DNA of 64,000 bases, taken from assembly GCA_020891255.1 (NCBI GenBank), contig BQFW01000004.1, forward strand, positions 620,001 to 684,000. Direction: 5' to 3'. The notes beneath the pieces were generated by a model. That model did no database searches and was not told where the DNA came from. It saw only the letters and a list, made by a program, of their open reading frames with translations. The position numbers and the translations under genes are program-made. Below are positions 16,092-58,912 of this stretch, piece by piece; the stretch's first letter is position 1, and each line of letters begins with the position of its first letter. This DNA comes from Entomortierella parvispora E1425. Lineage: Eukaryota; Fungi; Mortierellomycota.

Positions 16092-19000
16092 ATGGCACTA
16101 TGGCCCGAAAACGACTTTCACAATCTTGACAGCTCCGTCTTAGCGCCATTCAGGACACCCTTGCCTCTTCAGTTGCCTTCACTTCAATCGCATCAGCATG
16201 ATACACAAGACGATGATGGGGACAATGCCAATTGCAGTTTCTCCAGCATGAGCCTCAATATAAATGAGAAGAGGCTGTCCAGAGACAATCAACTGAAAGA
16301 TGATCCAACTCCGAGGATAGAAGGCTCTTCTGATACCATCCTGCATGGCGGACGATCTCCGTCAAGGTACGAACTTGACAGAGCAAATGGCCAGATATTG
16401 TTCTGGTTTTATTTTGGAAAACTGGTCTAAACATCTCTCTTTTCCTTTTCTCACCTCTTCCTTGCGCTTTTCCTTGCAGTGCTGGTGATAACAACAACAT
16501 GTTCGAGCTTCTCCCGCTGAAGAACACCGCGACAGATCGACAACTGGAGGCACGGATCCGCGATGCATCACTTCATCCCCTGCACCGCCATGATGATCGG
16601 TCAATAGCAGACCTTGGCATTTTGTCACCGCCAGTCCAGGAGCCGCGACCTTCCAAATCAACACGCCAAAGTCAAATCAAGACAGAAAAACGACCATCAA
16701 TTACCACGCCCATTGAAGTGGCCGAATTGGAGCGTATTCGTGCCGTTGTCCAGGCTTTTCTCTGTCAACGACCTTCGATTCATGAATACACTGTGCCTCG
16801 CCTATTTATTGTGCTTCCAGATGACATGCCTGAAAAGTCATCAGATCGGGACTCAGATTCCACTGGGCGGCGGGATCCATTCAAAGGCCCCGTGCGATAT
16901 CGACTCTATTTTCTATGTGAATGCAGCAACAGCTTTACATTACCACTAGGGAGCGGACTGAATCACCTGCACATTGCAAAGCACGGTGGCTACGGTATTG
17001 ATCCCAGTCGTCAGGAAGAGTTCTTCAATCGGTTTGGCCAAATGATCTTGACACTCTTGATCTTTCTGAAGCACGGACACCATCCAGAGGAGAGCTTGGC
17101 GCCGCAGAACGAAGAGTTACCGGACATGGTGTTGAAGCGAGTCGACAAACTCTCAAGCTTGAAGAAGGCTGATCTGCCAGACTCTATCGTCCCTCACCTG
17201 GATCAAAGAGTCAACAAAATGTTAAACTTTCTGGAGCGATTCAGGGAGACGCCTGAACTGCAAAATTTTCTTGGCGGCGAAAAGAGCGACACTCAAACCT
17301 CGAAGAAAAGACGAAGCAACAGCCTAGGCCTCCATGGGCTGAGTACGTTAGCCGATCTCCATCACCTCTACTCTTTTCTCGGGATCGCCAACGCCAGCGT
17401 TAGATATCAATCAGGACAGCTTGGAAACTTGTACCGGATCGGCAACGCGAGGGGTCAGGTCAGCTGGGTGTGCGTATACCATTATCGATGGACATTCCTG
17501 GAAAAGAACATTGATGAGTTTGAGCGATGGATCGTTACCCGCAGGGGCTTTTTCGACAAACAAACAGGATCGGTATCTATCTCGCTGGTTTCTCGCCAGC
17601 ATGCAAGAACTTTTTGTTCCTGGGTCTCTAACAAGGTCGCGCCGTCCTTGGTCGAGATCCATGTGAAATTGGGATGGAAGTATGGCAAGAATGACCTCAA
17701 AAGACTTGCCGAGACGCTTGCGGATTCTACCGTGACGGTATTGACCCTGGATGGGTGCTCTACCGAAGATGACTCGACCTACAAGATTTTCCACAAAAAA
17801 TACGACCCGATCCTCCATCTGCTCGCTCAAGGACAAATTCAGTCCCTAACACTACTGCACCTGCCCTCCTTCTTCACTCGACTTTCGCCAAAGGTTGTCC
17901 ATGCGCCGTCTCTCCGTCGACTAGAACTTGGGTTTGGAATGACCGTGGACCGGACAGATCAGAGATCCTTTATCAGCTTTCTGGCGTCATGTTCATCGCT
18001 TCAGGAACTGAGTCTTCCTGGTCTCTCGGTTTCCGATTTGCAGATGACGGCAGTCCTTGCTGGGGTGAAGAAAAATGAAAACTTGACAACCTTGGACATA
18101 TCTAGTAGCTGTCTTGATGACGGGGCTGCGATTATTCTGGCACAGGGACTCTTCAACACGGGTGTCTGTCACCTGGATCTATCCAAGAACGAACAATTAA
18201 GCGATGCTGGCGCGGCAAGGGTTATCAGAGCCATTGGACCAAAGCTAACTAGTCTAAAGATGGCACAAACAGGGTTTGGGGATCAGGCAGCGGCAGCACT
18301 TGCCAAGAGCATGGATGGGATCTCGATCAAACATACTCTGCGGGACCAGCTTCAACTTCAACATCGGCTGGACGTAGCGGCACTGACCGCAGGACATCGA
18401 CCTGGCTTGCGAGTTAGGGTTGGTGATGTGCCTCTAACATACCCCGAGTCATCATATTCTCGAGAGCAGACCCATACAGTGGGACATTTGGTTTATCTGG
18501 ACATTGAAGACAATCAATGTACTGCAGAAGGATTTCGGTCATTGGCAAGCATCAAGTCACGGTTCTATCTTCTATATCTGAATTTGGCAGGCAGTTGTGA
18601 CCTTGGAGACGAGGATTGTGGGCTTATTATGGAAAAAATGGCCAGTTCAGCCATGGTAACTCTCCGACTTTCTTGTACGGGATTTGGCAATGCATCGGCT
18701 CTCGCGCTCGCCCACGCCATTAAGACAAACCCGCCCGGAACTCGCGCTACGGACGGTCGGTCATCTGTACATTGTCGATTGGAGGAACTGGATCTACAGG
18801 GCTGCCCGATAGGTTCAGAAGGGTTTGTCGCACTGCAGGAGGCGTTTTCTGAAGTGCAGGCGTTTTCGAGTTTAAAGATACTGGATCTGGGACACTGCGG
18901 GTCGTTACAAGGCGACATGTCGGTGCAACTCTTGAAGACTTTTTTGATTCCAAACGGTGTGGAACGTTTATCCGATGTTCCTTCAATGAATCAATCTCGA

Positions 19001-40626: not shown

Positions 40627-41482
40627 GGCTTGTGCAATGCTGCACAGTGAGAGAGCTCGGAAGACGACAAAGCAACGGTCGCTGCGAGAAAAGAGATTGT
40701 GACACAACGGAATGGGAGAGAATGGGGAAAGAGATGCAGCCAATGGAGGTGTGGATGCAATGGACAGAAGAAAGGACTGCCAGCCCATGTCTCTCCTCCT
40801 CACTCTTGGCTTGGCTCTCTCTTCTATCTCTGCCATTGCATTCGAGAGCGTCTCCCTCCCTCTTATCTCTCTCCGCGCATCGTCGGTCGACCAAAGGCAA
40901 AAGAAAAGAAAAAAAAAAAAAAGGTGTCTTACTGTACGTCCAAGACGCGTCTCTGCCCGCGTGTCACGGCCGCGTCTCTGTGCCAAAGAGACCCCTATAG
41001 TCATTGCTACCCTACTCTGTGTAGGAGCTCACCTACTTTATGTGTTTCCACGCTGTTGTGGCCCCACTCAATCCTGGTTCAATAATGTTTATGGATGGAT
41101 GCCCCTTTCTATTGCTCTCTTCCATCGCTAAACTCATGACCAGACAGGCACGCATCTCCCTTTGCTCTCCGTGAAGAGCCATAGCTCCGTGTCATTTCCA
41201 CGTAACCTTTGCTCTCGCCCCTGTCCAAGATCATATCGGATATGCACTGCTATGTAGCTAGCTGTATAACCGTCATTGCCGTCATTTTTTTCTTTGGGGT
41301 AACGAGCTCAACGCATCGGTCATTCTTTTTGACAACAGCGGGTCGGCTATCATTAAGGGTATACATTTTTTTTATTGCAACTTTGATCTTTCTACATACT
41401 GCGGTCTAAAGCGCCTAGTAAATAAAGAAGTGGAGTGCGAGACCAAACTATCTACAACCTGAGCAAAGCCGCGTGGTCGTCG

Positions 41483-42225
41483 TTGCAGCCCCGAAACGAC
41501 TCCAATGGTACCAACCATCGGACACGCTCTTGTGGGCATCACTTTACTCTGCTTTTCATGACTTGTCAGCCTTCCGACCCCCTGAGCAGGGACAGCTCAA
41601 AGCTCCGTTGGCATCGGCTTGTTCTGTCGTCACTGCTTACCAAGGACTGCTCCATTCGGCTCTGATCGAGGCCTGGAGGCCAATTATTAAAGGCCCTCGC
41701 TCTGTCGTGGTCGCCGTTGCTCATCAGTTTATTCGTCGTCTGGACAGGGATGCCTTAGCTCGGCTCTGGAAGACGCGCTGCGAAGTGACTATTGCATGGG
41801 AGAAGACACAAGGTATCCGCCCCAAGATGAAGAAGCAAGCCCAGACTGGGCAACCGTGGAACAATGCCTCTGGTACGATCTTACCACCGGACACTTGCCA
41901 ATGCGGAAAGCCTAACACCGACCACCATCAAGGCCTCTGCCCTGGTGCCCAAGACAATCCCACGCTGGCCGACCAGCGCTTACTGGCTTGTGTGCGTGGC
42001 CAGGTTCACTTATCGACATTAGAAAAGATGGGGAAGATCCATTTTTTGTAACATTTTACTCTTCTTTATTACACGGTGACGAGCCGTGGCATTTGTTGCG
42101 CGGGGATCCGGGGTCTTTGTTCGTCTGGACCACGCGGCTTTGCTCAGGTTGTAGATAGTTTGGTATCGCACTTCACTTCTTTGGCTCGACATAGCAAATA
42201 AAATGTTGCAAAAAAAAAAAAAAAA
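41483..42225 (+). mobile_element. 5'-truncated non-LTR retrotransposon copy nested in the previous element
   Basis: C-terminal ORF2 coding sequence to the stop at 42051, then 3'UTR and a 16-nt poly-A (42210-42225), flanked by the exact 20-bp repeat GCAAAGCCGCGTGGTCGTCG (41463-41482 and 42226-42245). Confidence 0.85.
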
Positions 42226-42881
42226 GCAAAGCCGCGTGGTCGTCGACCGCCACACAACTTTGCCTAGTAAGCGACAACGGGCAACACACGCAGGCCTTTG
42301 GGCAGTTTTGGCATCAGTAGTAGCAGAACGTGAGGGCCGCACAGAGGTTGAGTGGGTGCGTGGGCACAGTGGCGACCAGGGCAACGAAACGGCGGATGCT
42401 ATCGCAACAAAGGCGGTTGAACAGGACACGACACCATGGCAGGCGGACCTCAGCACCCAGGACGACATCACCTTTATTGCATCTTGCCATGGACAACAGT
42501 TGGAGTCCGACTTGCGCCAGTTCCTCAAGCAACAGACCACTATTCGCCGCCACCAAACATGGACAGCACAGAATCGAGTTAAGAGAGCGATCAGCGACTT
42601 GGACGACGTGGAGTGGCGATCTGCTCTCTCGATCATCCACGCCAAACGGCCAGTCCATACTTTCTTCAGTAGCAGAGGGGACACTACCCGACGCACACAG
42701 CACATCGAAAAACTGCATGGGATGCTACCAACACTCACAGTCATGCAAGCGCGCTACCCAGACATGTACGAAGACGCACTCTGCTGTCGATGTGGCGACG
42801 CGCAGGAGGACAACAACCATGTGTGGACTTGTCCGAACTCAGTCAACCAACAAAGGCAGATATGGGAGGAAGCAGTGGCCA

Positions 42882-43338
42882 CTATTCCAAAGTGGGGCAG
42901 AGCTGCCATCACCAGAGCCAATGAGGAAGCTACCAAAAGACATCGTAAGCAACAAGCCCGCACACCCAACGTTGCCGCCCCGAGAGCACTTCAATGGCAT
43001 CAGCCATCGGACACGGCTCTGTGGACATCACTGTACGCTGCATTCCACGACTTGCCAACAATAAGATCTCCTGAAGTGTAACAGTCCTTGGTAGGCAGTG
43101 ACGATCGACCGTGCCGATGGCAGTGGAGAGGCAGTCTGTCCCACTTCAGGAGATCTTATTGTTGGCAAGTCGTGGAATGCAGCGTACAGTGATGTCCACA
43201 GAGCCGTGTCCGATGGCTGATGCCATTGAAGTGCTCTCGGGGCGGCAACGTTGGGTGTGCGGGCTTGTTGCTTACGATGTCTTTTGGTAGCTTCCTCATT
43301 GGCTCTGGTGATGGCAGCTCTGCCCCACTTTGGAATAG
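42882..43338. repeat. 197-bp perfect inverted repeat with 63-bp spacer
   Basis: 42882-43078 is the reverse complement of 43142-43338. The ORF track shows an identical translation on both strands. Confidence 0.95.
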
Positions 43339-43446
43339 CACATCATTAAGGGTATACATTTGTGCACGTGACTTGATGTCGAGACCGGTGAAACAGTAAC
43401 TGCTATGAAGACTTCAAAAGAGAACACATAACATCAAAAAGTGTCT

Positions 43447-43518
43447 GGTCTGCTGGCCCAATGGAAAGGCGTCTGACTACGAATCAGGAGATTGCAGGTT
43501 CGACCCCTGCGTAGATCA
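43447..43518 (+). tRNA. tRNA-Arg(ACG)
   Basis: Acceptor stem GGTCTGC/GTAGATC, D-arm TGGCCCAATGGAAAGGC, anticodon arm TCTGA-CTACGAA-TCAGG, T-arm GCAGG-TTCGACC-CCTGC. Confidence 0.93.
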
Positions 43519-43610
43519 TAGGAACTTTCTTTTTATAACCAACGTGTTTTTTTGTTTAGCCCCGCGCGTGGCATTCTGCCACGGAAGGAAGGTGGATTTT
43601 TTTTTCGAAG

Positions 43611-44308
43611 AATCTAACCAACGACTCAGTCGTTTGTTAGTTTTCCACCGACCATGGGGGGACTTTCCTTTTTGAGCCTCTTATCCGTCGACCTTGACAT
43701 CTCGTATCCGCCGACCATTAACCACCGACCCCTCTCTAAACCACCGACCTTCCTGTCTCTCATCCACCGACCGCTCTCTAATTCGCCGACCTAACCATTG
43801 CCGTATCCGCCGACTTGTCTTCATCTTATCTGCGGACGACCCCTTCCTTAGTCCTCGACCTAACCAAGGTACTTTGTTCATGTCAACGAAAAAAAATCTA
43901 GATCGGTGACTTATAGACCGGCGGTGTCTTTCTCACCAACCGCTGTCCTTTCGAGCAGCCGGTCACCAACAGCAGAAGTTTCAAGGACCCAGCTGGCCAA
44001 GCTACAAGGGAGATATTGCTAGACACATTGGTATAAGATCCATGGTATCTACTTTTCACAAGTTCAGGAGAGAGTAATTACTTCGCAACTTTTGGTAAGT
44101 TTGAACCCCCCCAAAATTCCACAAGTCGGCGGCTACGGAAGTGTCGGTGGTCAAGAAACGGAGTGGTCGGCGGATGAGGGGCGGATTAGAGAGGGGTCGG
44201 TGGTTAATGGTCAGCGGATACGAGATGTCAAGGTCGACGGATAAGGCGCCCAAAAAGGAAAGTCCCCCCATGGTCGGTGGAAAACTAACAATGGTCGTTG
44301 GTTAGATT
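43611..44308. mobile_element. ~700-bp MITE / non-autonomous TIR element
   Basis: ~130-bp imperfect terminal inverted repeats (AATCTAACCAACGAC..GTTAGTTTTCCACCGACCATGGGG..CCGACCCCTCTCTAA at 43611-~43745 vs ~44186-44308). No coding capacity. AT9-like runs on both flanks may be a TSD but this is not resolvable. Confidence 0.75.
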
Positions 44309-45887
44309 TCTTATTTTTTTTTGCTTTACTCTGTCAAAGGTCTCGTAGGCAACACTGATGTTCATTCTCGATCAAGAGGCGACATACAGTTGAAAGACAG
44401 GCGGAGGAGGATATGGCCCCACTCCCTGATGGGTTTGCGCCTGTGGTATACTCCCCGGGTTGAGGTGCCAGTAGATCAGGAATCGAGGGGGAAGTGGAAG
44501 GAAGATAATCGGGGTGGAGTAAGACCAGCATGGTCAATGGGCCGATTTTTTTTTTGTCCAATTTTTTTTTCTCCTGACATTCACACTTTCACTCTCGCAC
44601 AAACTCCCCCCAAAACACCACACAACCCTGCTGCTGGCGCCCCTCCTTTCTGAGGCTCTGCTCGGGCTTCCACCCTTCGCGCGAAGACTACTTTCTGGAC
44701 TCGGTTCAGGCTGACGTCTTCACTTGCGCTATGCGTAAAGATTGCTGGGGGGCACTTAGCTCGTGCTGACGCACTCACGTTGATTTGCTAAGTAGCGGGG
44801 AGAAGAGAACAATGAAAAAAAAATCGATTGGTAGCGGCAACGCATGGTTGAGATAAGCAGAGCTGTAGACGCTAGGATCGTAGACGCTTTTTTGCAGGTA
44901 GATCGAGTATGAAAAGGTCATGGTTGGAGGATACCAAGGTCGGAGGAGAACTAGTCTATCAATAATTAGGGGTTGGCTGGACAATGGCGCGTCAGAACAG
45001 GCCCACCGCATGGCCGGTTCTGGTGACATCCCTATGTTTGTACGTACTACAGCATCGGCCTAGTTTATATCTATCTCCTACAAAATTTCAGGTACTCTGT
45101 TGATCATGTCCTATTTGGTGTTTGTCTGCCTACCAAGACTATGGGCATTCTCATGGAACACCACTGGACAAAAGCTCGAAGCAGTCGCACTCTTCATGTA
45201 GCTTGATGGCACTTTTTTTTTTTTTTTTTTTTTTTTGGCAAAGGACCCCCGAGGGGATGCCCGATGGACTGTGGCGGCCTACCTGCCAGATAGCTCTCCA
45301 GTTGCGCACATTCCAGATCCAAACTGTGATCCAGTCCAACAAACGACTCGATCGGAGAGAATAATAGAGGAGTTTGGGAATCGGTTTTGCCACCAAACGT
45401 GTGATAAAATTTTTCCTGTCTTGAAGAGGTGACCAAAAAGATTTTTCTTCTTTCACTTTTTCTTTCCCAAGCCCTTCTTCATCCTCCCTTCGCTCTCTCG
45501 TTATTCACTATTCACCTCATACCACCTCGCCGACAGTTGCCACCACGATGACTGCAGCACCCTTATTTGCTTGACTTTTTTTTTTTTTTTTTGCGGTCGT
45601 CCATCCCCCATTGTTGTATCGACACTCCCAGTCCAGCTCCTTTTTGACAAGAAACCCCTGGCAAGGTGCCCCACCACCACTCCTTGTTCATCACTACCTC
45701 TTCAACAGCACACTTCCAGAGCTTTTCCTGGTCCACCCAAGTCCACCTGGGTCCATCTGCCACATTCTGATACCTTTGACAATTGCTTTGTTGTTCGGTT
45801 GCCTGTTGTTCGGTTGCCTGGTCAACTGGGTCGGGTCAAGTGCCCAGTTGACCTAGTGGACCCACCGACAGGAAGCTCAGCACCTCC

Positions 45888-45927
<40 letters not shown>

Positions 45928-45928
45928 A

Positions 45929-46370
45929 CCTCACCACCTCAGTGTTCTTTCAAACTTGCCTACCTGCCTGCAGACGTTTCGCTGTCGACTTGAGAAGAAA
46001 GAAAAAAAGCGATCCCTTCCAGAGTTGTTGTTCTTGCCGACAGTGAGTGGCCTGCCCTCCACCCCACCACCACAGCACCTCTACTCGCTCTCTGTGCCTC
46101 ACCACCTCAGTGTCCTTTCAAACCTTCCTACTTGCCTCTCTGTCTGCAGACGTTTCGCTATCGACTTGTCGACTTGAGAGAAAAAAAGAAAAAAAAAGCG
46201 ATCCCTTCCAGAGTTGTCGTTCTTGCCGACAGTAAAAGGGCTGCCCTCTACCACCCCACCACAGCAGCTCTACTCCCCCTCGGTACCTCACCACCTCAGT
46301 GTCCTTCCAAACCTGCCTACCTACCTCTCTATCTGCAGACGTTTCGCTGTCGACTTGTCGACTTGCCAAA
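45929..46370. repeat. ~170-190 bp degenerate tandem repeat x2.5 inside left arm
   Basis: CCTCACCACCTCAGTG..GACGTTTCGCT(G/A)TCGACTTG units begin at 45929, 46097 and 46286, and are mirrored at ~58001-58425. Confidence 0.85.
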
Positions 46371-46427
46371 AAAAAAAAAAGAAAAAAGCGATCCTTTGCC
46401 TTTCCCCTCGCACAAAAGCAAAAGCAA

Positions 46428-46499
46428 AGGTCGATGCGAGGTTCGAACTCGCGTTGCCTGATTCAAAGTCAGGAGTACTAACCGCTATACTAATCAACC
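46428..46499 (-). tRNA. tRNA-Gln(TTG)
   Basis: Reverse complement of the 53263-53334 tRNA, identical over 72 nt. Confidence 0.93.
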
Positions 46500-47059
46500 A
46501 TTTTTGTTATTGAACTTTCTTTTCAACTTTTTCTATTTGAACTTCCGTGCCTGTGTTTGCACGTGATTTCATCTTGAGAAAACCAAAGTTGTCCCTGCAT
46601 TTTTGCATTTTGCACCTCCTCGGCGCCTGCGCTGCATCTTCGGGATAGTCACGGATCGATGGATCACCGTCAATTGCCATGGGTATGTTCGAAAAGGTCT
46701 TGGTCGTCGGTAGAGAAGGTAAGCATGAAAAAGATGTGTTTTTTTCCTTTTTTTTTTGATATCACACACGAACAAGCTACAGAATTTGCTGCGCGGGATA
46801 TCAGCAGCACGACTAGACTCGGACACCATCGAAATGTCAGTCTTTGGGCACTTTTATTGAACAGTTTACTTTTACTCCTACAATTGCGAATAAATGCTGT
46901 TAAGGACGAATTAAAGAAAATTATAGTAAAAAAATCAGTGAGTCATGGTCGTGGTAGAGGACTCGGCAGTGCTAGAATCAGCTTGGTGGGTCCACTAGGT
47001 CATGGGGTGAGGTAGAAATCAACACGTTGGCTCGGGGTATCGCGACTGGCAATCGCTGC

Positions 47060-47093
<34 letters not shown>

Positions 47094-47865
47094 CCGGCAT
47101 CGCGGTCATGGCTGGGCAGAAAAATCCGATCCATCTCTGTGGAATATCCTCTTTTTTTTGACGATATTTCCCATGTACAAGCCAGGGGAAGAATCAAAGC
47201 CGGATTACTAGAATGCTCCTGCAGCGAATGTATTCTGGTATGTCCTCAAGTAAAGTGAAAGACCGATATGATTGAGGTAGACCCGCATCTGGGACGCAAT
47301 GGTGACACACATCTTGAAGCAGGGTGCCATTTTATCAGCGGTGGAATCCAAAAAAAAAAAGTGAAGAGCTGTCATCAATCAATCTGAACGTAGAATGACA
47401 ACGAGTTGAACTTTTTTGAATCTGTGATATGAACGATTTAGGAGTTACGGGTAGAAGACTGTGTTGACTGAGAAGGAGTCTTATATTTGGAGCTGCTTGA
47501 TCAAACCGTCTGTTGTTTTCCTCTGTTCGGGAAAAGATGCTTTCTGTGCGTCTCCCGGCACAATTAGCAGACTCTCCAGTAAAGGCGATGGATTTTGAAA
47601 CTTGCATCACGAATTATCTTTGATAAAGCTAACCCGATGAAGTTTGAAGGGAGGTGAAAGGAATCAGCTGGCATTGAGCGATCGCTCAACAAAGAGAGTC
47701 AAAAATTATATCGAGCAAAATCAAGAAGTGTTGATTGTCATGCTCTTTGTTGAAGGCGCAATTGCAACGTACCAGACTAAGTAGACGCATTATGTATGAT
47801 GGAGGCCTCATAAAGATCATTTATTTGTAGACTGATATTGAAACTCTATAACGGTTTGTCATTAC

Positions 47866-50805
47866 TCACGAAATCAGAATGTTGCACTCTTCGCCTCTTT
47901 TGAACCTGTTCAGTTCTTCGTTAGAGACTTTCCACCTCAGGAGCGCCTTCTTGTTATCATTCCCAGATTTACTTTTCTTGTCCCTCTGTGCAGCCAACAC
48001 CCAGTAGCGCCGTGCGAGTTCCACAGGAAGATCAAAAATAGAAGTCATGTAAACGCGTTCGAATCTGGCCGATGTGCTTTCGTTGGGAAGCGAGCACGTA
48101 TGTGTTGGCGTTTTGAGCGCACCATTTGCGCCACAGTTCGGGAGGAAAGGCCTGCGATAGACGCATTGACGCGGCTTGTTACCACATTTCGCCAAAATAA
48201 TGGGCCACTGGCTTCGCCATTCGTGAGTGATGTATTTTATCATGAAGTCGATCTTGTATGAGTTCACCCAGCGGGTGTCGTTAGGACGAGAGTCGCTATC
48301 CACCTTGAAGCTGCACCGGACATGAGTCTCCAGATATCGATCCAATGCCATGATGATCAAGAATTCCGGGCTTGTGTCGTCGGTGTAATCATTGGAAGGG
48401 GCAGCCATAATCTTGATCCGGTTGGGAATCCATGGGCATCCCACCACAATATTCGAGGCCATTTCCAACTTCCATCCGCCAGCAGCTGTCACATGATCGT
48501 GGTCTTTGTCTGACAGGAGATCAAAGATGTTGTGGGCGTAATACAGCGGCTTCAGGTCGCAAATGTCGATGAGCTTGGCCTTTTCCCCCGTTGTTTCGTG
48601 GCAGTGGTGAGTGGTTTCAAGGCCTCCGATTTCCTCCCTGTCGCAGCCGCGGCATGTGGCGTGGAAATAATAGCTCGTGTTATACTGATCCCTACAGTAC
48701 TGGTCCATGTTGGCGACGGCACACTTGATACTATCCAAGGAGAACCCTGAACGCTCAACCCCGAACCTCTTGTTCCTGGTTATAAAGTCTTGAAGTGCGT
48801 CGGGATTGTTGACAAAATGCTGGGTGCCGTACGAGCGAGCGGACATGGACAAGTATTTGCCCTCCGGGACTTTGACAAACCAGTCTCGATGCTCTGTGCT
48901 ACAAGCCTCTACCGTCGAAGGACAAAACGACTTTAAGTGGTAGATACCCCGATCTTGGCGGTCCTTCAGAAACGTGCGATACTCGTTCCATTGTTCAATG
49001 CGAGCATTGAACTGAGGAGAAAGGTCAGATGGCACCAGTTCAACATTGGCTTGTAACATGGTGTCTGGCACAGGAGCTCCGAGGGCAACGGTCATGTCCC
49101 GCAATGGATAGCCTTTGGTATGGAACTCCTTCTCTGCATTCCTTGCCTTTGATGCATATTGACGTGAGGAAACCAGAGCCAATTGGCAAGCGGCCACCTC
49201 CTTCCGCTTTTCTTCAAACAACTCATGTAAGCTCGGGGAACCGGCAGAACCGGGCTTCTTCCACTCATCTTCGATGAACTGCCTGATTTCTTTCAAATCA
49301 TCAAGGGAACCTAGCAACCCCTTCCAGTCGAGAATGGCATGGCAGGCTGTGATGTACTTTGCCTTGCACAGGTAGTGGAGCTCACAATAAAGAGGAGCCA
49401 GCGAAGGATCATACGCAATATTGCCTGGGTCGCGTTCAGGTAAATGCAGAGCGTAATCTTGGGCCCCGGGGCCATAGCGGATGATAGAGAGGGTGCCGAT
49501 CACATCCATGAAAGCAGGGTGCCTCAGTTCGTCCCATTCGAAAGTATCATCACGCAAGGACTTGATTATATCGGGATCGTCCAGCATAGTTCCGTTAATG
49601 TCCGAGAGTACCTCGCTTGCCCCTGTTACCTGAGCAAGCATGTCTGACTGCAGGATGTTGGCAACCTTGGAAGAATGGCTCACGGCGAGTATGGGGCGTA
49701 GAAGTTGAAGATTCTGACAGAGAAGTGCAGCGGCGACGGCGACATCTTGATGGACTTCTGTAAACTGCCAAAAGTCCAGTCGAGGAATAGAAAGTCCAGG
49801 AATGAGATGACTGCGAATATGATGCTCAGCGCGAGGGGCTCGACCGGCAGTCAAGCTGTTGTAGGCGAAACCTCCCTTCATGGCCTCTAGAGGGATATCC
49901 TTTGAAATCAAGACCGAGAGCACTCGGCCTCTGTCTTTGCAAGTCTGGATGTTTTGGGTGTCCCCGATGATCTCATCCAAAGCTGTATCCGTGACCAAGG
50001 ACTTGGGATCCACTAGTTTTGAAAACACAGCATGGTTGAACTGTTGCTGTTCCTTGATACTGTTTTTCAGGTCGGTATGGGCGGGGGACGTCACCGGTTT
50101 GATCACCGCCAGTGGTGCAGCCTTGGCGAGCAGGGATTCGAGGTCCTTAGAAGGGGTCCAGCGATAAAAGTAGCCACCCGAGGCCGAGTTGAGGCAGTAC
50201 GGAAAGACAGTCGCGATCAGATTTTGCTCAATCTCGTCGTAAATGCTGAGTGCACGGACGTCCGTCTCTTGGTTCACAAGATGGCGGTGCAGTTCATAGA
50301 TCTTTTTTGGGTTTCTGTCGCGGCTAGGGAGGAGGCTCAGCAGGTTCTTGAGGCGACTCCATTTGGGATCCTCCTGGTCGTCTTTGGCGCGGCCTTGTGC
50401 AGTGGATCTGTAGGCCATCCCAACATACGGAATGAGTAGGGTCTTGTCTGGAGATTTATCCAGGATCGCCTGGGCCCACTCTTTGTCTGCGCTGTAGCTA
50501 TCTCTGTACTGCAAGAGTACTGTTCGAGGCACAGAGTAGAGGCGAAGGTAGTATTGAACATAGTCGCCAGAATTGGGTGGCGGCTGTGATTTAGAACAGA
50601 GCTTGAGCGTGGTCTTGGTTTTGGAAATGCTCAAGGGATCCTGAGCAACCTGGAGGAGAGGAGTCCAATTGCCCCGAAAACTTTGGAAAGATTCTTCGAG
50701 GTGGTTGTTAAGAGTTCGGAGAGACTGACGGGTGCGACCAGCATTAATGTGGAAAAGCAGATCCGATCCAGTATCCAAAGGAGCCGAGGATGAACTGGAG
50801 GACAT
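47866..50805 (-). CDS. Intronless 979-aa protein with GIY-YIG-like N-terminal motifs, a UDG-fold-like central segment and Cys/His-rich C-terminus
   Basis: Open 2.94-kb frame from ATG 50805 (MSSSSSSAPLDTG). Motifs YYLRLY..IPYVGMA..GRA..DEIEQNLIA..CLNSASGG, VLISKDIP..AG..LDFW..LRPILAVSHS, CRGC..THHC and CG..THTC. The CDS is well supported; the domain calls are pattern inference. Confidence 0.75.
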   Translation of the reverse strand: MSSSSSSAPLDTGSDLLFHINAGRTRQSLRTLNNHLEESFQSFRGNWTPLLQVAQDPLSISKTKTTLKLCSKSQPPPNSGDYVQYYLRLYSVPRTVLLQYRDSYSADKEWAQAILDKSPDKTLLIPYVGMAYRSTAQGRAKDDQEDPKWSRLKNLLSLLPSRDRNPKKIYELHRHLVNQETDVRALSIYDEIEQNLIATVFPYCLNSASGGYFYRWTPSKDLESLLAKAAPLAVIKPVTSPAHTDLKNSIKEQQQFNHAVFSKLVDPKSLVTDTALDEIIGDTQNIQTCKDRGRVLSVLISKDIPLEAMKGGFAYNSLTAGRAPRAEHHIRSHLIPGLSIPRLDFWQFTEVHQDVAVAAALLCQNLQLLRPILAVSHSSKVANILQSDMLAQVTGASEVLSDINGTMLDDPDIIKSLRDDTFEWDELRHPAFMDVIGTLSIIRYGPGAQDYALHLPERDPGNIAYDPSLAPLYCELHYLCKAKYITACHAILDWKGLLGSLDDLKEIRQFIEDEWKKPGSAGSPSLHELFEEKRKEVAACQLALVSSRQYASKARNAEKEFHTKGYPLRDMTVALGAPVPDTMLQANVELVPSDLSPQFNARIEQWNEYRTFLKDRQDRGIYHLKSFCPSTVEACSTEHRDWFVKVPEGKYLSMSARSYGTQHFVNNPDALQDFITRNKRFGVERSGFSLDSIKCAVANMDQYCRDQYNTSYYFHATCRGCDREEIGGLETTHHCHETTGEKAKLIDICDLKPLYYAHNIFDLLSDKDHDHVTAAGGWKLEMASNIVVGCPWIPNRIKIMAAPSNDYTDDTSPEFLIIMALDRYLETHVRCSFKVDSDSRPNDTRWVNSYKIDFMIKYITHEWRSQWPIILAKCGNKPRQCVYRRPFLPNCGANGALKTPTHTCSLPNESTSARFERVYMTSIFDLPVELARRYWVLAAQRDKKSKSGNDNKKALLRWKVSNEELNRFKRGEECNILIS

Positions 50806-52601
50806 TATTTTGGGAATGATAGCGCGGGAACGGAGCTGAGAAGACTGGGTGAGTCGTACTGCAAAAGCAAATAGCAGAAAAAACAGCAAATAGCAGAAAA
50901 AACAGCAAAAATTTGTGAGGATCAGTACTATGTATATTTTTTCAACGCTGAGAGGCAGATGGAGATTGCAAACGAAGTAAAGGCCAATACTTACGAGCAA
51001 GATATGATGAAGTAAGAGCTGACGCGAAATGTCGTTTGACTTTGCGAAGGATGAACCTAGTACTCGATGCCGTAGAATCAGAGGGTGGTACGTGGTTCCA
51101 AGGCGAAAGGCAAGTAGCCAAACGATCCAGGGGCGAGTAAGGAAAGAGTAGGGGCAGGTGGAGAGAACAATAGAAATAACAGTGAATGAAGCGAACAATG
51201 GGTTGAGAGAACAGTGGGCAACTGGAGGGAACGGTAGGTAGAGAGAACGGTGGGTAGAGAGAACAGTAGGCGAAGAGAACAGGGGGTGGGTGAGAAGGTG
51301 AAGGAACAAGAGATCTGGTTTGAAAACGGGAGGGTACTGAAGGTGCTTTTATCTTCATGACCCGGCGCAGAAGAGAGTGGTGGACAAAAACGAAAGCGAA
51401 AACTTGTGGATACACGCTTTTTTGTTTGATCAAAGACAGTTGCATGCGCACAGTTGATTGTCCCGATACAGATCGGGCAATCAGGCAGATACCGCAAAGC
51501 GTCGAAGCGACCGTTGCGCATCCGAGCGCCACTATTATTATCATTTCGTTCTGGGGGGTACACACTTTTAGTGTGGCAAAGTTCCGACAACATGGGAACA
51601 TGGGAGAAAAGGCAGAGCAAACAAAGAGACGCGCCTGCAGTCGTAGTGGCGGTGATGTCCACGCGCGAGAGATGCGTGCATGCACGAAATCTGAAAATGG
51701 GTGGCTTGTATTTGAACATGTTGGCATGTTGGATAGAATCACTCGGACAAAGAGCATGTTTATTGTGATGCTTGTGAGGCCATAGCTAGGCCGTTTCTGG
51801 GAAAAACAACGACAGGGTAGTACCACAGCTATCAGAAGGGGACATGGTGGTGAAAATATCAGCTACAGATGGCAATAGCTACCTTTGGGTCATTTTTTTT
51901 TATATTGTCCACAACTGGTACCGAAGGAATTTCCATAGTGGACAACTGTGACACAGCTGACGAGACATCACCTGGCCAAACAACTCCAGGGAACGCTTGG
52001 CCTGCATATGTGGTGTCCAGATTGGGTGATAAAGGATGGAGACCGACTGTATTCTCATGTTCGATTTCAATCGCTCCACGCAACAAGAGGGACGCGAGGG
52101 ATTGTCGCGTCGATTGTTGCTGATAAGAGGTCAAAGAGAGGAAGGAGGGAGATCAAAGGAAATGATCACCCACTTTTGTACAGAGCAGAGAATAGCTGAC
52201 ACGAAAATAGACAACAGGCACGTCGATCGAGATGAGAGGATCAGTACGCGCGCGTTGCCCAATTTTGCCTAGGATCTTTGCCTGAGCACATTGGACGGAC
52301 GCCTCAAATCCCGACCGACTGCTGTCCACGCCTGCGACACTGGTCATACAGGGGTTCCGCTATCGATGGTGACACCCCTGCACTCATCTGTAGGTCCATC
52401 TCACTGCCAAATCCGACCGTAGGAACGCTCGCCTTCCGTCCAATTCTATCTCCTCTGACTCGCCATCCACGTTCATAGCTGGTTACTTTGTAGTATAGAC
52501 CTTGCCATATCCTAGTTGGCCCTCACACTATACCATTAAAACCTATGTCCCCAAACTCCATTGTTTGACCGTGCCAGTCTGAAGGGGGAAAAAAAAAAGA
52601 A

Positions 52602-52667
52602 AAAAAAAAGAGGATATTCCACAGAGATGGATCGGATTTTTCTGCCCAGCCATGACCGCGATGCCGG

Positions 52668-52703
<36 letters not shown>

Positions 52704-53392
52704 GCAGCGATTGCCAGTCGCGATACCCCGAGCCAACGTGTTGATTTCTACCTCACCCCATGACCTAGTGGACCCACCAAGCTGATTCTAGCACTGCCGA
52801 GTCCTCTACCACGACCATGACTCACTGATTTTTTTACTATAATTTTCTTTAATTCGTCCTTAACAGCATTTATTCGCAATTGTAGGAGTAAAAGTAAACT
52901 GTTCAATAAAAGTGCCCAAAGACTGACATTTCGATGGTGTCCGAGTCTAGTCGTGCTGCTGATATCCCGCGCAGCAAATTCTGTAGCTTGTTCGTGTGTG
53001 ATATCAAAAAAAAAAGGAAAAAACACATCTTTTTCATGCTTACCTTCTCTACCGACGACCAAGACCTTTTCGAACATACCCATGGCAATTGACGGTGATC
53101 CATCGATCCGTGACTATCCCGAAGATGCAGCGCAGGCGCCGAGGAGGTGCAAAATGCAAAAATGCAGGGACAACTTTGGTTTTCTCAAGATGAAATCACG
53201 TGCAAACACAGGCACGGAAGTTCAAATAGAAAAAGTTGAAAAGAAAGTTCAATAACAAAAATGGTTGATTAGTATAGCGGTTAGTACTCCTGACTTTGAA
53301 TCAGGCAACGCGAGTTCGAACCTCGCATCGACCTTTGCTTTTGCTTTTGTGCGAGGGGAAAGGCAAAGGATCGCTTTTTTCTTTTTTTTTTT
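52602..53392. repeat. Right arm, inner part, of large inverted repeat
   Basis: Near-identical reverse complement of 46381-47159, differing mainly in homopolymer lengths. Confidence 0.95.
53263..53334 (+). tRNA. tRNA-Gln(TTG)
   Basis: Acceptor stem GGTTGAT/ATCGACC, anticodon arm CCTGA-CTTTGAA-TCAGG, T-arm GCGAG-TTCGAAC-CTCGC, followed by T-rich terminator-like runs. Confidence 0.93.
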
Positions 53393-53530
53393 GGGTTTAT
53401 CTATTTGACAACCCAGGTTGTTCGTTTTACCTGACAACCCACTCTATATTTGGTTAGTCTCGTTTTTTATTCGGCAACCCACCTGTCATTCCTCAATTGA
53501 CAACCCAGGTTGCCAAACAAACGTTTATTT

Positions 53531-54743
53531 TTATGAGTGCTGTCTAGAATTGTGACCTTCCCCGCTGCACACTCCACACTTCGTTGATTTTTTTTTTGTC
53601 TCCATGCTGCTCTTTATCCGAGAAGTCCTCGGTCTGCCCTTCGTCTTTGTATAGTGAGGATCCTTCATACCTTCTTCGCCTGCCCCCCTCACAATGACAC
53701 GGTTTAGGCCATCTTTAACTGTTTCGAATACTTCTGGATTGGAGTTCACGGTGTCCATGATATTCTTCATCAGGCCAGATATCTCTCCAATGCGGCGTTT
53801 TTTGGAAAGGTTGCGTTTATCAACCCCCGACAGGGATGGCACTGAGGGGAAAACCTTCATGATATCGCTCATGAAAGAAGAAGCAGGCTCTCCCTCTGCA
53901 CTCCCCACCTGAGCGACCGTCTTCTGCGTTTTTGCGCTCAAAAACGCCCCTGAGAGATCAAGATCTGTTAGGTCCTGCAGTTCTTCTTTAAACCACCGCA
54001 TCGGAATAAGCCTGACATGATACTTGCATCTGTCACTAACTTGCATCAGATGGAAATAGTGTCGACATACAAATCCGCTGTTTTGGAGGAGGAGGCAAGT
54101 ACAAATGTACGAGCCATCAGCCAGTAAAAGTATGTGCTGAAGTGACTTTCGCTCCGTGTCCAAGCGGAACGTCACGTCGAAGATTTGTACAATTCGATCA
54201 GAACCAACGATTGTCTGGATGGACTGGAGAGAGCTCATTTCGCGATTGTCTTTTGACGATCTCTCAATCTAAGGACAAAGAGAAGAATAACGGCTTAGTA
54301 CCTCTATCTGGTCTTAGGATTGCGCTTGGGTATTGGAATGATGTACAAGTACTTACTTCCTCGAAATCACCTCCTTCGATTGATCGTGGAGCACAGGCGT
54401 CTATACCTGTGTGTGGATTGGACTGATACAAAACAGAGCGCGACATCTCTAACTTCATCTGACTTTTTGCTGCGATGCCAAGATAGCGATTGTTTGCATC
54501 GATAACATCGGCAAACATTTGCTGAACAAACATCGACGTTGCGGGATCAACCGTTGTATCCGTCTTGTAGAGAATATACTTTGAAGTCTGGGCTTCATTT
54601 GATAGCTTCTTTTCAATTGCCTCGAACAGTGCTGGAAGGGACGTCTTGCCATTGACGGCCCTTTTGATGGCCGCATTCATACTCTCCACACGCTGAGTCG
54701 ACTGTGGCTGTATTGATCTGCCGTCGGTCAACCCCTCGGTCAA
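53531..54743 (-). pseudogene. C-terminal remnant of MULE/FAR1-type transposase
   Basis: QSTQRVESMNAAIK motif, intron 54356-54269 (GTAAGT..TAG, frame kept), SWIM finger CTC..CRH, RW motif, KGRP and CGVC-GHN knuckle. The DDE core upstream is missing and is replaced by the tandem array. Confidence 0.85.
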
Positions 54744-56039
54744 ATAAAAAAAAAAGCCTTTGCATGCAACAGTAGACCATTCCTAATTGGGACTTCTGGC
54801 GACTCGCAAGGACTCGCAAGACGGTATGTGTACCATGGTCGGCCAAAAGAAAAAAAAAGATCCATTTTGCCTTCTGTATGCATGCAATTGACAGACATCC
54901 CCTAGGTCATAGAGGATGATAGTCCAGTGGGCTCTGACCTTGTCTGAATCAGAAGACTGGAGCGGGTATCAGCTGTGTTTCTTTCCTCTTGTATTGATCT
55001 ACCCCCGGGTCAACCCTCGGTCAAATAAAAAAAAAAATCCTCTGCATGCAAGTAAACCATTCCTAATTGGGACTTCTGGCGACTCGCAAGGACTCGCAAG
55101 ACGGTACGTGTACCATGGTCGGCCAAAAGAAAAAAAAAGATCCATTTTGCCTTCTGTATGCATGCAATTGACAGACATCCCCTAGGTCATAGAGGATGAT
55201 AGTCCAGTGGGCTCTGACCTTGTCCGGTCCGGAAGACTGGAGCGGGTATCAGCTGTGTTTTCTTTCCTCTTGTATTGATCTACCCCCGGTCAACCCTCGG
55301 TCAAATAAAAAAAAAAATCCTCTGCATGCAAGTAAACCATTCCTAATTGGGACTTCTGGCGACTCGCAAGGACTCGCAAGACGGTACGTGTACCATGGTC
55401 GGCCAAAAGAAAAAAAAAGATCCATTTTGCCTTCTGTATGCATGCAATTGACAGACATCCCCTAGGTCATAGAGGATGATAGTCCAGTGGGCTCTGACCT
55501 TGTCCGGTCCGGAAGACTGGAGCGGGTATCAGCTGTGTTTCTTTCCTCTTGTATTGATCTACCCCCGGTCAACCCTCGGTCAAATAAAAAAAAAAACCTC
55601 TGCATGCAACAGTAGACCATTCCTAATTGGGACTTCTGGCGACTCGCAAGGACTCGCAAGACGGTATGTGTACCATGATCGGCCAAAAGAAAAAAAAAGA
55701 TCCATTTTGCCTTCTGTATGCATGCAATTGACAGACATCCCCTAGGTCATAGAGGGTGACAGTCCAGTGGGCTCTGACCTTGTCCGGTCCGGAAGACTGG
55801 AGCGGGTATCAGCTGTTTTCTTTCCTCTTGTATTGATCTATCCCCGGTCAACCCTCGGTCAAATAAAAAAAAAAGCCTTTGCATGCAACAGTAGACCATT
55901 CCTAATTGGGACTTCTGGCGACTCGCAAGGACTCGCAAGACGGTATGTGTACCATGGTCGGCCAAAAGAAAAAAAAGATACAGTTTGCCCTCTGTATGCA
56001 TGCCATTGACAGACATCCCCTAGGTCATAGAGGATGATG
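54708..56039. repeat. 280-bp tandem repeat, ~4.8 copies
   Basis: The anchor CCTAGGTCATAGAGG recurs at 54901, 55181, 55461, 55741 and 56019. Units are highly similar and there are no spacers. Confidence 0.97.
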
Positions 56040-56195
56040 GTCCCACATGTTCTTCTGGTTCGAAACAAAGGGACTGACTCGACTGACTCGTACATCCAGG
56101 CTTCTTGTGTCAGCAACTCCCACATGTATAAATATGTGTACTTGCGGCATCCAGTTCTGTATCTTGTCCTCCTCATCGTTCTCACCTCTTCCAAC

Positions 56196-57047
56196 ATGCC
56201 TCGTGGTGCTTGCACTTACGGCTATTGCGCGCTAGGTCTCCTCCCCCCTGCCGAACCCAAGACCAAAAATCAGAAGAACCATGTTGCAGGGTATCACGTC
56301 GACAACCCCATCAAGTTCATGTGCGGGTACACTGATCGACAAGTCACCTTTAGTCGAATTCCCACAAAACACATGGATTTCGTCTGCTACTGTGGCCTGA
56401 CGTTCACCCTTAACTCTTCGATCCATCGCCATTACCATTACTGTGCCGTTGCCAGGGACGCCGCCCTAAATGCAATCGCACATCCACCTCCTCCTGGTGC
56501 AGGTGGTGCAGGCGATGGCAATGGCGTTATTGTTGCGCCGGCGCCTCCTTCAACGGCCCTGGTGGTAGCGGAGCGCAGCGTCGGGAGCATTCTGGAGGAA
56601 AAGTTGATTGAGCAACATCAAGCCTTCCTGGAGACGTTCACAGGACAGAGCGCGAAGCTCGTCGAGAGCATGACCCAGTCTCAGTTGTCGTTTCTGAACA
56701 CCTTCACCGCTTCGTATGCTGAACAAGCTGTGGCACATCAGCGCAGCATCGCTGAACATAACCGCTTGGCCTTAGAGGAGCAGCGCACGGCCCTCGAGGA
56801 GCAGCGAGCTGCCATTGAGATGCAGCGAGCAGCTGTTGAGGAACAGAGAGTGTTCTACAATCGCCATCAAAACAATCAAGCAGAGATAATGGCCGAGCAG
56901 AAGCTTACAAGGGACGAGGTTAGAAACCTCATGTCACTCAAGCGCGATCGATCTTTCACGTTGGAAGTCAGCGAGCGAGCACTCAAAGGCCTTCAGAGTG
57001 ACCCATCTTACATGGTCAGCCCCTGCCAGGACGACGAGGACATGTGA
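56196..57047 (+). CDS. Hypothetical 283-aa protein inside the MULE (Cys/His finger-like N-terminus, coiled-coil C-terminus)
   Basis: Open frame from ATG 56196 with CYCGLTFTLNSSIHRHYHYC and heptad-like EEQRTALEEQRAAIEMQRAAVEEQR. An AATAAA signal follows the stop. Confidence 0.6.
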   Translation: MPRGACTYGYCALGLLPPAEPKTKNQKNHVAGYHVDNPIKFMCGYTDRQVTFSRIPTKHMDFVCYCGLTFTLNSSIHRHYHYCAVARDAALNAIAHPPPPGAGGAGDGNGVIVAPAPPSTALVVAERSVGSILEEKLIEQHQAFLETFTGQSAKLVESMTQSQLSFLNTFTASYAEQAVAHQRSIAEHNRLALEEQRTALEEQRAAIEMQRAAVEEQRVFYNRHQNNQAEIMAEQKLTRDEVRNLMSLKRDRSFTLEVSERALKGLQSDPSYMVSPCQDDEDM

Positions 57048-57161
57048 AAGACAGATAGTGCGCAATCCCACGTCGACGAAGTGTAACAGGTTATGTTCGC
57101 AATTATTCAATAAAAATATTCTTGCGAAATATCTTCTGATGCTATGGCGGACGCGGTGGAC

Positions 57162-57885
57162 TTTTTTTTTTTTTACATATTATTTGCTATGTCGAGACAG
57201 TGAAGCGAAGTGCGAGAACAAACTACTAACAATGAAGCCCGAATCCCCGCGCAACAAATGCCACGACTCATCGCTGTTTAATAAAGAATAAAATGTTACA
57301 AAAGTGTCGATATATGAACCTGGCCACGCACACCAGCCAGTAAGCGCTGGTCTGCCAGCTTAGGGTCATCTTGGGCATCTGGGCAACGGCCTTGGTGGTG
57401 GCCGGAGTGAGGTTTACCGCATTGGCAGGTGTCTGGTGGTAAGATCGTACCAGATGCATTGTTCCAAGGTTGGCCTCGCTGTGCTTGCTTCTTCATCTTG
57501 GAGCGGATGCCTTGAGTCTTCTCCCAGGCAATAGTAACCTCGCCGTGTGTCTTCCGGAAACGTGCAAGAGTATCCCTATCCTGACGACGGATAAGTTGAT
57601 GAGCAACTGCGACCACGACCGAGTGAGGGCCTTTAATAATTGGAGTCCAGGCCTTGATCGAAGCGCAGTGTAACACTCCTTGGTAGGCAGTGACGACCGA
57701 CTGAGCCGATGCCAACGGGGCTGGTGCCAACGGGCTGGTGATCTGTCCCCTCACAGGAGGTCAGGTCGTTGGCGAGTCATGGAAGGCAGAGTACAATGAT
57801 GTCCACAAAGCCGTGTCCGATGGCTGGTACCATGGAGGCGGTTTCGGGCGGCAACTTCGGGTTTGCGGGCTTGTTGCGAACGAGG
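57162..57885 (-). mobile_element. Degenerate 3' fragment of the same non-LTR retrotransposon family
   Basis: T13 at 57162-57174 (poly-A), with 3'UTR and coding similarity to 41483-42225 (WEKTQGIR.KMKKQAQ.GQPWNNASGTILPPDTCQCGKP). Confidence 0.85.
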
Positions 57886-57990
57886 TGGAGCTCACTATCT
57901 GACAACCCAGGTTTCCATGCAATTTTCCAAAGTGTGACTGGTGGGTTGTCAAACAAAACGAACAACCTGGGTTGTCAAATAGATAAATCC

Positions 57991-58430
57991 TTTTTTTTTT
58001 TGGCAAGTCGACAAGTCGACAGCGAAACGTCTGCAGATAGAGAGGTAGGTAGGCAGGTTTGGAAGGACACTGAGGTGGTGAGGTACCGAGGGGGAGTAGA
58101 GCTGCTGTGGTGGGGTGGTAGAGGGCAGCCCTTTCACTGTCGGCAAGAACGACAACTCTGGAAGGGATTGCCGGGTGTTTTTTTTCTCAAGTCGACAGCG
58201 AAACGTCTGCAGGCAGAGAGGCAAGTAGGAAGGTTTGAAAGGACACTGAGGTGGTGAGGCACAGAGAGCGAGTAGAGGTGCTGTGGTGGTGGGGTGGAGG
58301 GCAGGCCATTCACTGTCGGCAAGAACAACAACTCTGGAAGGGATCGCTTTTTTTCTTTCTTCTCAAGTCGACAGCGAAACGTCTGCAGGCAGGTAGGCAA
58401 GTTTGAAAGAACACTGAGGTGGTGTGTGTA

Positions 58431-58479
<49 letters not shown>

Positions 58480-58912
58480 CTGAGGTAGTGAACTGGGGGT
58501 GGCAGTGGATAACAGTCTTCTACTCTTTTCGGCTCCAACTGAGTTTTTTTTTTTCTTTGACCAGGGGATGGGCCGACTGCACTGAAAAAAAAAAGAGGTA
58601 GAGAGACCTTTACTCGTCAAAGACAACCCTTTTGGCCAGGTCAGTTGAAAAGAGAAAACTGGCAGAGTTGGAAAAAGTCAACCGTTGCAGTCCTGTCGGT
58701 GGGTCCACAAGGTCAACTGGGCACTTGACCCGACCCAGTTGACCAGGCAACCGAACAACAGGCAACCGAACAACAAAGCAATTGTCAAAGGTATCAGAAT
58801 GTGGCAGATGGACCCAGGTGGACTTGGGTGGACCAGGAAAAGCTCTGGAAGTGTGCTGTTGAAGAGGTAGTGATGAACAAGGAGTGGTGGTGCTGGTGGT
58901 GGGGCACCTTGC
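57991..58912. repeat. Right arm, outer part, of large inverted repeat
   Basis: Reverse complement of 45661-46380 with substitutions and an extra ~190-bp block (~58480-58688). Confidence 0.9.

Follow-up and report, generated by a model that had tools for sequence, protein, structure and literature searches.

Introduction

How did a single nuclease-like gene of the fungus Entomortierella parvispora E1425 come to lie between two inverted arms that each carry a tRNA gene? The locus was analysed within a window of 64,000 nucleotides (GenBank assembly GCA_020891255.1, contig BQFW01000004.1, positions 620,001–684,000 of the forward strand), and coordinates below refer to this window unless a homologous locus is named. 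A first-pass annotation had considered a large terminal inverted repeat (TIR) element, a composite transposon, an inversion-prone cassette and two independent copies of a dispersed repeat as explanations. The reading that we favour, with modest confidence, is a local two-copy inverted duplication of a tRNA-Gln locus around a resident gene, in which the arms have probably undergone gene conversion and the core could flip.

Architecture of the inverted repeat

The left arm (45661–47159; 1,499 bp) and the right arm, which consists of an inner part (52602–53392) and an outer part (57991–58912), are reverse complements of each other. A repeat finder and self-BLAST placed both arms where the first-pass annotation had put them, and the extent of the left arm was also obtained by global alignment. 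No strand is assigned to the arms, to their tandem units, to the core between them or to the insertion that divides the right arm. The mirror-image match of the arms is far beyond chance. In a global alignment with the insertion taken out of the right arm, the arms share 1,460 matches and differ by 25 substitutions over 45661–47159.

The differences between the arms are unevenly distributed. The inner 925 bp (46235–47159) contain no substitutions and differ only in homopolymer length, and the same holds for the inner part of the right arm compared with 46370–47159. The outermost 202 bp of the two arms differ by a single base. The diverged part is the middle of the arms, which is made of tandem units of 176–189 bp and a (CT)n tract. 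Two patches that adjoin indels (45876–45931 and 46183–46200) account for 19 of the 25 substitutions. The repeat finder detected two 189-bp units in the left arm (45995–46372) and 176-bp units in the right arm (58012–58363). The outer part of the right arm combines these tandem repeats with 196 bp that are extra relative to the left arm (58495–58690) and with the outer 202-bp block. The arms also differ in the (CT)n/(CA)n tract and by a 9-bp indel. The earlier description of near-identical inner parts and more diverged outer parts is correct for the inner parts but not for the outer ends, which are near-identical again beyond the diverged middle.

Each arm contains one tRNA-Gln(UUG) gene, as expected from the earlier claim of tRNA-containing arms. 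The gene lies on the minus strand in the left arm (46428–46499) and on the plus strand in the right arm (53263–53334), with 64 bits in Rfam in both cases. The two genes are identical and face outward from the core, and T-runs follow them (just 3′ of the gene in the left arm), giving each arm a complete tRNA gene with an RNA polymerase III (Pol III) terminator. When the arms and the core were searched against Rfam with a relaxed threshold, no hits other than these two tRNAs were obtained. The arms have the appearance of a normal tRNA locus transcribed by Pol III, and neither convincing coding exons or open reading frames (ORFs) nor a transposase were found in them. The duplicated unit would be a tRNA-Gln(UUG) locus of ∼1.5–1.7 kb whose two inverted copies bracket the unique segment.

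The right arm is divided by a 4,598-bp insertion (53393–57990). Its 50-nt TIRs (53393–53442 and 57941–57990) are 92% alike, and a 9-bp T/A target duplication is deduced from a run of 13 T in the left arm versus 11 + 11 T in the right arm. No Pfam families were found in the ORFs of the insertion, and no MuDR-type transposase was found. By its ends, the insertion fits a non-autonomous Mutator-like element. Of the earlier claim that a later Mutator-like element split the right arm, the later TIR insertion is borne out, and the Mutator-like identity is compatible with the sequence in spite of the missing transposase. The structure without the insertion measures 8,645 bp, in agreement with the ∼8.7 kb given previously.

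Copy number of the core and the arms

The core between the arms (47160–52601) comprises 5,442 bp with a GC content of 0.49–0.51, and self-BLAST detected no second copy of it within the window. It contains a single long ORF, which is intact, in accordance with the earlier report of a 5.4-kb core with one intronless 979-aa gene. Copy number was measured as word depth in Logan contigs of run X1, one of two runs, probably of the source sample, that existed as Logan contigs. The core has a word depth of 76.2, compared with 80.8 in the left flank and 136.4 in the inner-arm contig. In the Logan graph, the core forms one unitig of 5,502 nt, corresponding to the 5,442 bp and 30 nt into either arm. The Logan contigs reproduce the arrangement of core and arms independently of the assembly, with the arm contig at ∼2-fold depth. 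Because the depth of the core is close to that of the flank and the depth of the arms is about twice as high, the core occurs once and the arms occur twice in the genome. The dispersed-repeat alternative is thereby eliminated, and a multicopy transposon becomes less likely. The cluster of the 979-aa protein likewise has one member on one contig.

Two chance copies of a dispersed repeat, or an artefact of assembly, would suit a genome that is rich in repeats and in transposable elements near tRNA genes. The arm depth, however, is ∼2-fold that of single-copy sequence and no higher, the arms are colinear over 1.5 kb that include unique sequence and a tRNA gene, and the independent short-read graph yields the same core unitig with arm overlaps. 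The E. parvispora genome (38.7 Mb in 19 contigs with 192 tRNA genes) was assembled from Nanopore reads at 409× (PMC8759367), which makes a collapse artefact unlikely. Chance or artefact can hardly be credited as the source of the structure. Nanopore, Illumina and RNA-seq data of strain E1425 are public (PMC8759367). Exactly two inverted, colinear arm copies lie around a unique spacer, which is the arrangement of an inverted segmental duplication.

The enclosed gene

The gene in the core is an intronless coding sequence of 979 codons and a stop codon on the minus strand (47866–50805), with its first ATG at 50805. The annotated protein EMPS_02793 (889 aa) is 100% identical to the 979-aa ORF over the first 878 residues and departs from it afterwards. 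Full-length relatives align to approximately residue 970 of the 979-aa ORF, so that the longer, intronless ORF is probably to be preferred over the 889-aa annotation. Upstream of the ATG and still inside the core are a CT-rich leader and a putative 5′ untranslated region (5′UTR) intron of the form GTAAGT...CAG (50859–50994, minus strand), which was read from the sequence. In total, ∼1.8 kb of the upstream sequence of the gene lies in the core.

The closest relative of the gene is located on a metagenome contig (L002) and shares 61% amino acid identity with it. Against this relative, the two halves of the gene show dN/dS values of 0.36 and 0.35 at a dS of ∼0.8. The gene is under purifying selection. 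With its intact ORF, CT-rich leader, intron-like stretch and dN/dS values, it looks like a normal expressed gene. The L002 homologue itself is split into ORFs of 553 and 428 aa that overlap by 4 nt (L002 2840–2900), in a poorly conserved linker (residues ∼556–570). This split corresponds to a frameshift, an unrecognised intron or an assembly error.

Proposed gene conversion and inversion of the core

Although the arms differ by a 196-bp indel and a 4.6-kb transposable element insertion, their inner 925 bp are free of substitutions, which is suggestive of homogenisation between structural barriers. In the proposed mechanism, gene conversion from arm to arm would keep the arms alike, and reciprocal recombination between them could flip the core. 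The gene should not be affected by such a flip, since ∼1.8 kb of its upstream region and the likely 5′UTR intron are part of the core and would move with it. The structure would not have been moved by the enzyme that it encloses.

A different role for inversion would be that of a regulated switch, in which the nuclease gene or a neighbour would be expressed differently according to the orientation of the core. A comparable case would be the flip-flop mating-type loci in methylotrophic yeasts, and here also a unique segment is enclosed by two inverted arms that are nearly identical. Each arm moreover contains an exon-like stretch that points coreward, consisting of an ATG, 13 codons and a GTAAGC donor-like site (46679–46724, plus strand, in the left arm, and mirrored in the right arm). 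To judge from its letters, this stretch could be a first exon or a product of chance. The gene nevertheless brings its own upstream sequence within the core, the arms lack convincing coding capacity, no site-specific recombinase is present and the outward-facing tRNA genes would be unaffected by a flip. We regard a regulated switch as very improbable.

The inverted duplication with gene-converted arms that we prefer resembles the palindromes of the primate Y chromosome and the plastid inverted repeat with its flip-flop isomers, which likewise have two near-identical inverted arms and a unique spacer. As in those systems, substitutions are nearly absent while structural differences persist. Unlike them, the arms here are small (1.5 kb), the duplicated sequence is a nuclear tRNA-Gln locus, the spacer contains a single nuclease-like gene, and conversion and inversion are presumed. 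A literature search for tRNA-associated inverted repeats in Mortierella gave no relevant results. The structure can be regarded as one more small palindrome with a spacer, and it shows that tRNA loci are duplicated inversely and stay alike in a fungus rich in transposable elements.

The layout also recalls the fission-yeast centromere, in which a unique core of several kilobases lies between tRNA-bearing inverted repeats (imr). In contrast to the centromere, the core here has an ordinary GC content and contains a protein gene under selection, the arms are tiny and outer repeats are absent. A centromere-like layout was rejected on the grounds of size, composition and the selected gene.

Predicted structure of the enclosed protein

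The protein was modelled with AlphaFold2 (mean pLDDT 82, pTM 0.67). Structure matches and conserved residues assign residues 82–209 (50179–50562, minus strand) to the GIY-YIG nuclease fold, and structure matches assign residues 243–493 (49327–50079, minus strand) to the uracil-DNA-glycosylase (UDG) superfamily fold. The C-terminal ∼280 residues (approximately 700–979; 47869–48708, minus strand) are Cys/His-rich with CxxC...HHCH and C...C...HxC patterns, from which they are probably zinc-binding. A feature search with the C-terminal 290 residues gave only weak, unusable leads and no fold match.

Modelled alone, the GIY-YIG domain reaches a pLDDT of 89 and shows the catalytic-domain fold of a three-stranded sheet with helices. 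The best five of 48,161 chains in a VIA-wide search with this domain model are all GIY-YIG nucleases, namely I-TevI (Z 6.9), PD-T4-3, T4 EndoII, HIGLE and the N-terminal domain of UvrC. I-TevI aligns with the domain model over 87 of 92 residues with a root-mean-square deviation (rmsd) of 2.8 Å, and its catalytic domain matches residues 82–209 in the whole-protein model with a Z of 5.9. Foldseek with the GIY-YIG domain alone returned only noise. In 28 family sequences, the Y127, G129 and N206 residues are invariant, E193 is at least 90% conserved and R139 is the majority residue. The Y127, R139, E193 and N206 residues have a spacing that we take to be like that of the I-TevI residues Y17, R27, E75 and N90. 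They correspond to the conserved Tyr (YIG), Arg, Glu and Asn active-site set, and catalytic activity is putative. The earlier suggestion of a GIY-YIG-like, non-DDE enzyme is supported by the fold matches and by the conserved Y127, G129, E193 and N206 residues.

The domain shares its fold with I-TevI, T4 EndoII, the N-terminal domain of UvrC, HIGLE, the 5hmC-specific PD-T4-3 and the endonuclease of Penelope-like elements. It differs from these nucleases in that the protein has no Pfam GIY-YIG match, a helical insert of ∼35 residues separates strands one and two, and the same polypeptide also carries a UDG-fold domain and a Cys/His-rich tail. In addition, the gene is nuclear and free-standing, and is neither intronic nor joined to a reverse transcriptase.

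The second domain resembles family-4 UDG and UdgX over its whole length. Residues 243–493 superimpose on family-4 UDG (1l9g) with a Z of 15.5 over 184 of 191 residues (rmsd 2.8 Å) and on UdgX with a Z of 14.4. Foldseek (probability 1.0) and the ESM Atlas (TM 0.81 by target) also support the UDG fold, and further structure matches extend to uncharacterised AlphaFold DB proteins, one of which is named a UDG-like domain protein. In contrast to the fold, sequence identity to family-4 UDG and UdgX is only ∼9–12%, the protein has no Pfam UDG match and canonical motifs are not evident. The I304, E307, G311, G312, Y315, A320 and G321 residues are invariant in eight close Mortierellaceae-type members at the place of family-4 motif A, where a canonical UDG motif is not present. 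The domain may just bind or flip a base, and glycosylase activity is putative. On these models, the 979-aa protein is a putative DNA nuclease with a possible ability to recognise bases that are damaged or modified. No description of a GIY-YIG domain combined with a UDG-fold domain was found in the literature searched on it.

Distribution of the protein family

An exhaustive profile-free search with the 979-aa protein retrieved 104 cluster representatives at E ≤ 0.001. Close relatives occur in Mortierella, Podila, Linnemannia and Gryganskiella, and distant ones occur in Rhodotorula and Mycena. The module common to the family spans residues ∼80–510, and one distant member bears an added UCH domain. 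Pfam gave nothing relevant for the 979-aa protein, six relatives and all 37 alignment members, and PDB sequence searches with whole-protein and domain profiles gave no match. A metagenome scan for more family loci returned just one contig that was already in the set. The family is patchy and fungus-wide (Mortierellaceae, Rhodotorula, Mycena, Aspergillus and others) and has no Pfam model.

The enclosed gene is the more useful product of the locus; it defines a fungus-wide family that joins GIY-YIG to a UDG-fold domain. The pairing suggests an enzyme that would read a damaged or modified base and cut nearby, as in repair or genome defence.

Transposon readings and homologous loci

A large TIR transposon, as first proposed for the locus, is not supported. 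The core is single-copy, the arms occur only here, and the outer ends lack a target-site duplication, since the left flank (...CCCCTG) and the right flank (TGCAAAA...) have only the 2 bp TG in common. The earlier annotation had also called for a comparison of arms and termini with related loci, and no similarity to the window arms was found at any homologue locus or in its flanks. A sensitive alignment of the L002 flanks with the window core and arms produced no match in the arms and, 5′ of the ATG, just two very short colinear ones. A tblastx comparison of the window flanks with the homologue loci for synteny detected only a shared transposable element with an RNase H-like ORF. Pfam detected no transposase of a known class, reverse transcriptase or recombinase in the protein and its relatives, whose folds are GIY-YIG and UDG. 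A composite transposon was likewise proposed, and it was rejected on account of arms devoid of transposase.

Long-TIR DNA transposons (Polinton/Maverick, foldback and long-TIR hAT or Mutator elements) resemble the locus in their long inverted ends, their gene for a DNA-acting enzyme and a size of 8.6 kb. The locus differs from them in being single-copy, without target duplication and without a DDE transposase, an integrase or any known transposase. Its ends, furthermore, are an ordinary tRNA locus that is not conserved among related loci.

Several observations weigh against a local inverted duplication around a resident gene. A very recent duplication would give much the same arm pattern as the gene conversion and flipping that we infer. 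The remaining observations come from homologue loci, where inverted repeats again occur around the gene. At L002, the contig (a k141 contig) ends in perfect 141-nt inverted sequences 6.3 kb apart, and the repeat at this locus is deduced from these contig ends alone. Ends of this kind are typical of a unique segment flanked by inverted repeats, as with the Logan unitig of the core. At L011 (Linnemannia elongata), the gene is enclosed by 252-bp arms that share 86% identity and are separated by 6.1 kb. At L008, a distance of 5.3 kb separates inverted ends of 96 nt, of which the right-hand one extends into the 3′ end of the coding sequence. A purely accidental duplication does not predict inverted repeats at a spacing of 5.3–6.3 kb around three homologues. 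In addition, L011 8633–13372 and L017 7494–13040 represent the same ∼5-kb gene block with 80% nucleotide identity next to different neighbour genes in two Linnemannia genomes; the blocks are paralogues or a block that has moved. Partial family copies lie near the full gene at five loci (L007 4672–5076, plus strand; L008 11–103, minus strand; L010 2630–3433, minus strand; L011 8057–8692, plus strand; L013 5462–6457, minus strand), and three of them are inverted. A patchy, fast-evolving family with nearby partial copies and a block with changed neighbours has traits of selfish or mobile genes.

The same observations speak for a mobile or selfish element built on the GIY-YIG/UDG-fold gene. In one form of this explanation, a low-copy transposon would have the arms as its long TIRs. 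In a second form, the 5.4-kb core would be a homing-like cassette that inserts into or next to tRNA loci, and the inverted repeats would arise at insertion or be a prerequisite for it. GIY-YIG enzymes drive the mobility of homing endonuclease genes and of Penelope-like elements, which counts in its favour. A tRNA gene also lies within 3 kb of the homologue at two of eight loci. At L011, a tRNA-Thr gene (7502–7573) is located 48 nt inside the left arm, and at L012, a tRNA-Met gene is found 0.8 kb downstream of the gene. From 192 tRNA genes in 38.7 Mb, ∼4.5% would be expected per locus (p ∼0.04 for two of eight loci).

Against a mobile element stand the single core and the mere two arms in the genome, the missing target duplication and the lack of any known transposase, reverse transcriptase or recombinase. 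Arm sequences are wholly different between loci, and no bracketing repeat was found at L009, L010, L012, L013 and L017, each of which has several kilobases of flank. At L011, the arms come from a local repeat with three copies and fall outside the block in common with L017, so that they do not form a conserved component of a mobile unit. To our knowledge, no GIY-YIG TIR transposon has been described. A mobile element in either form is therefore considered unlikely. A more specific proposal is that the family is an undescribed fungal selfish element, a nuclease cassette of ∼5–6 kb that inserts itself at tRNA loci and either generates inverted repeats on its two sides or depends on them, with the single copy in the window perhaps domesticated or recent. 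We consider this proposal improbable. If it were true, the 5.3–6.3-kb spacing of inverted repeats at four Mortierellaceae loci would be its signature. Since family genes are found repeatedly next to inverted repeats and partial copies, a new selfish element retains a small probability.

The local repeat at L011 occurs in three copies in alternating orientation (7203–7454, 13552–13804/13708–14099 and 18151–18530). Its copies enclose first the family gene and next a gene of 889 aa that is unrelated.

Nearby repeats in the window

The Mutator-like insertion in the right arm contains approximately five tandem units of 280 bp that are 85–100% alike (54698–56043). A further element of ∼1.8 kb lies outside the arms at 41481–43250. 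It has TIRs of 170 bp (41481–41649 and 43082–43250) and an RNase H-like ORF (42203–43081), and it is related to 57162–57886 within the Mutator-like insertion. At the protein level, it is also related to pieces beside the homologous gene in L002 (5037–5457), L011 (8630–8895) and L017 (7494–7640). Just downstream of a tRNA-Arg(ACG) gene (43446–43519), a 208-bp fold-back with 80% identity and a 303-bp spacer is formed by 43611–43818 and 44121–44308.

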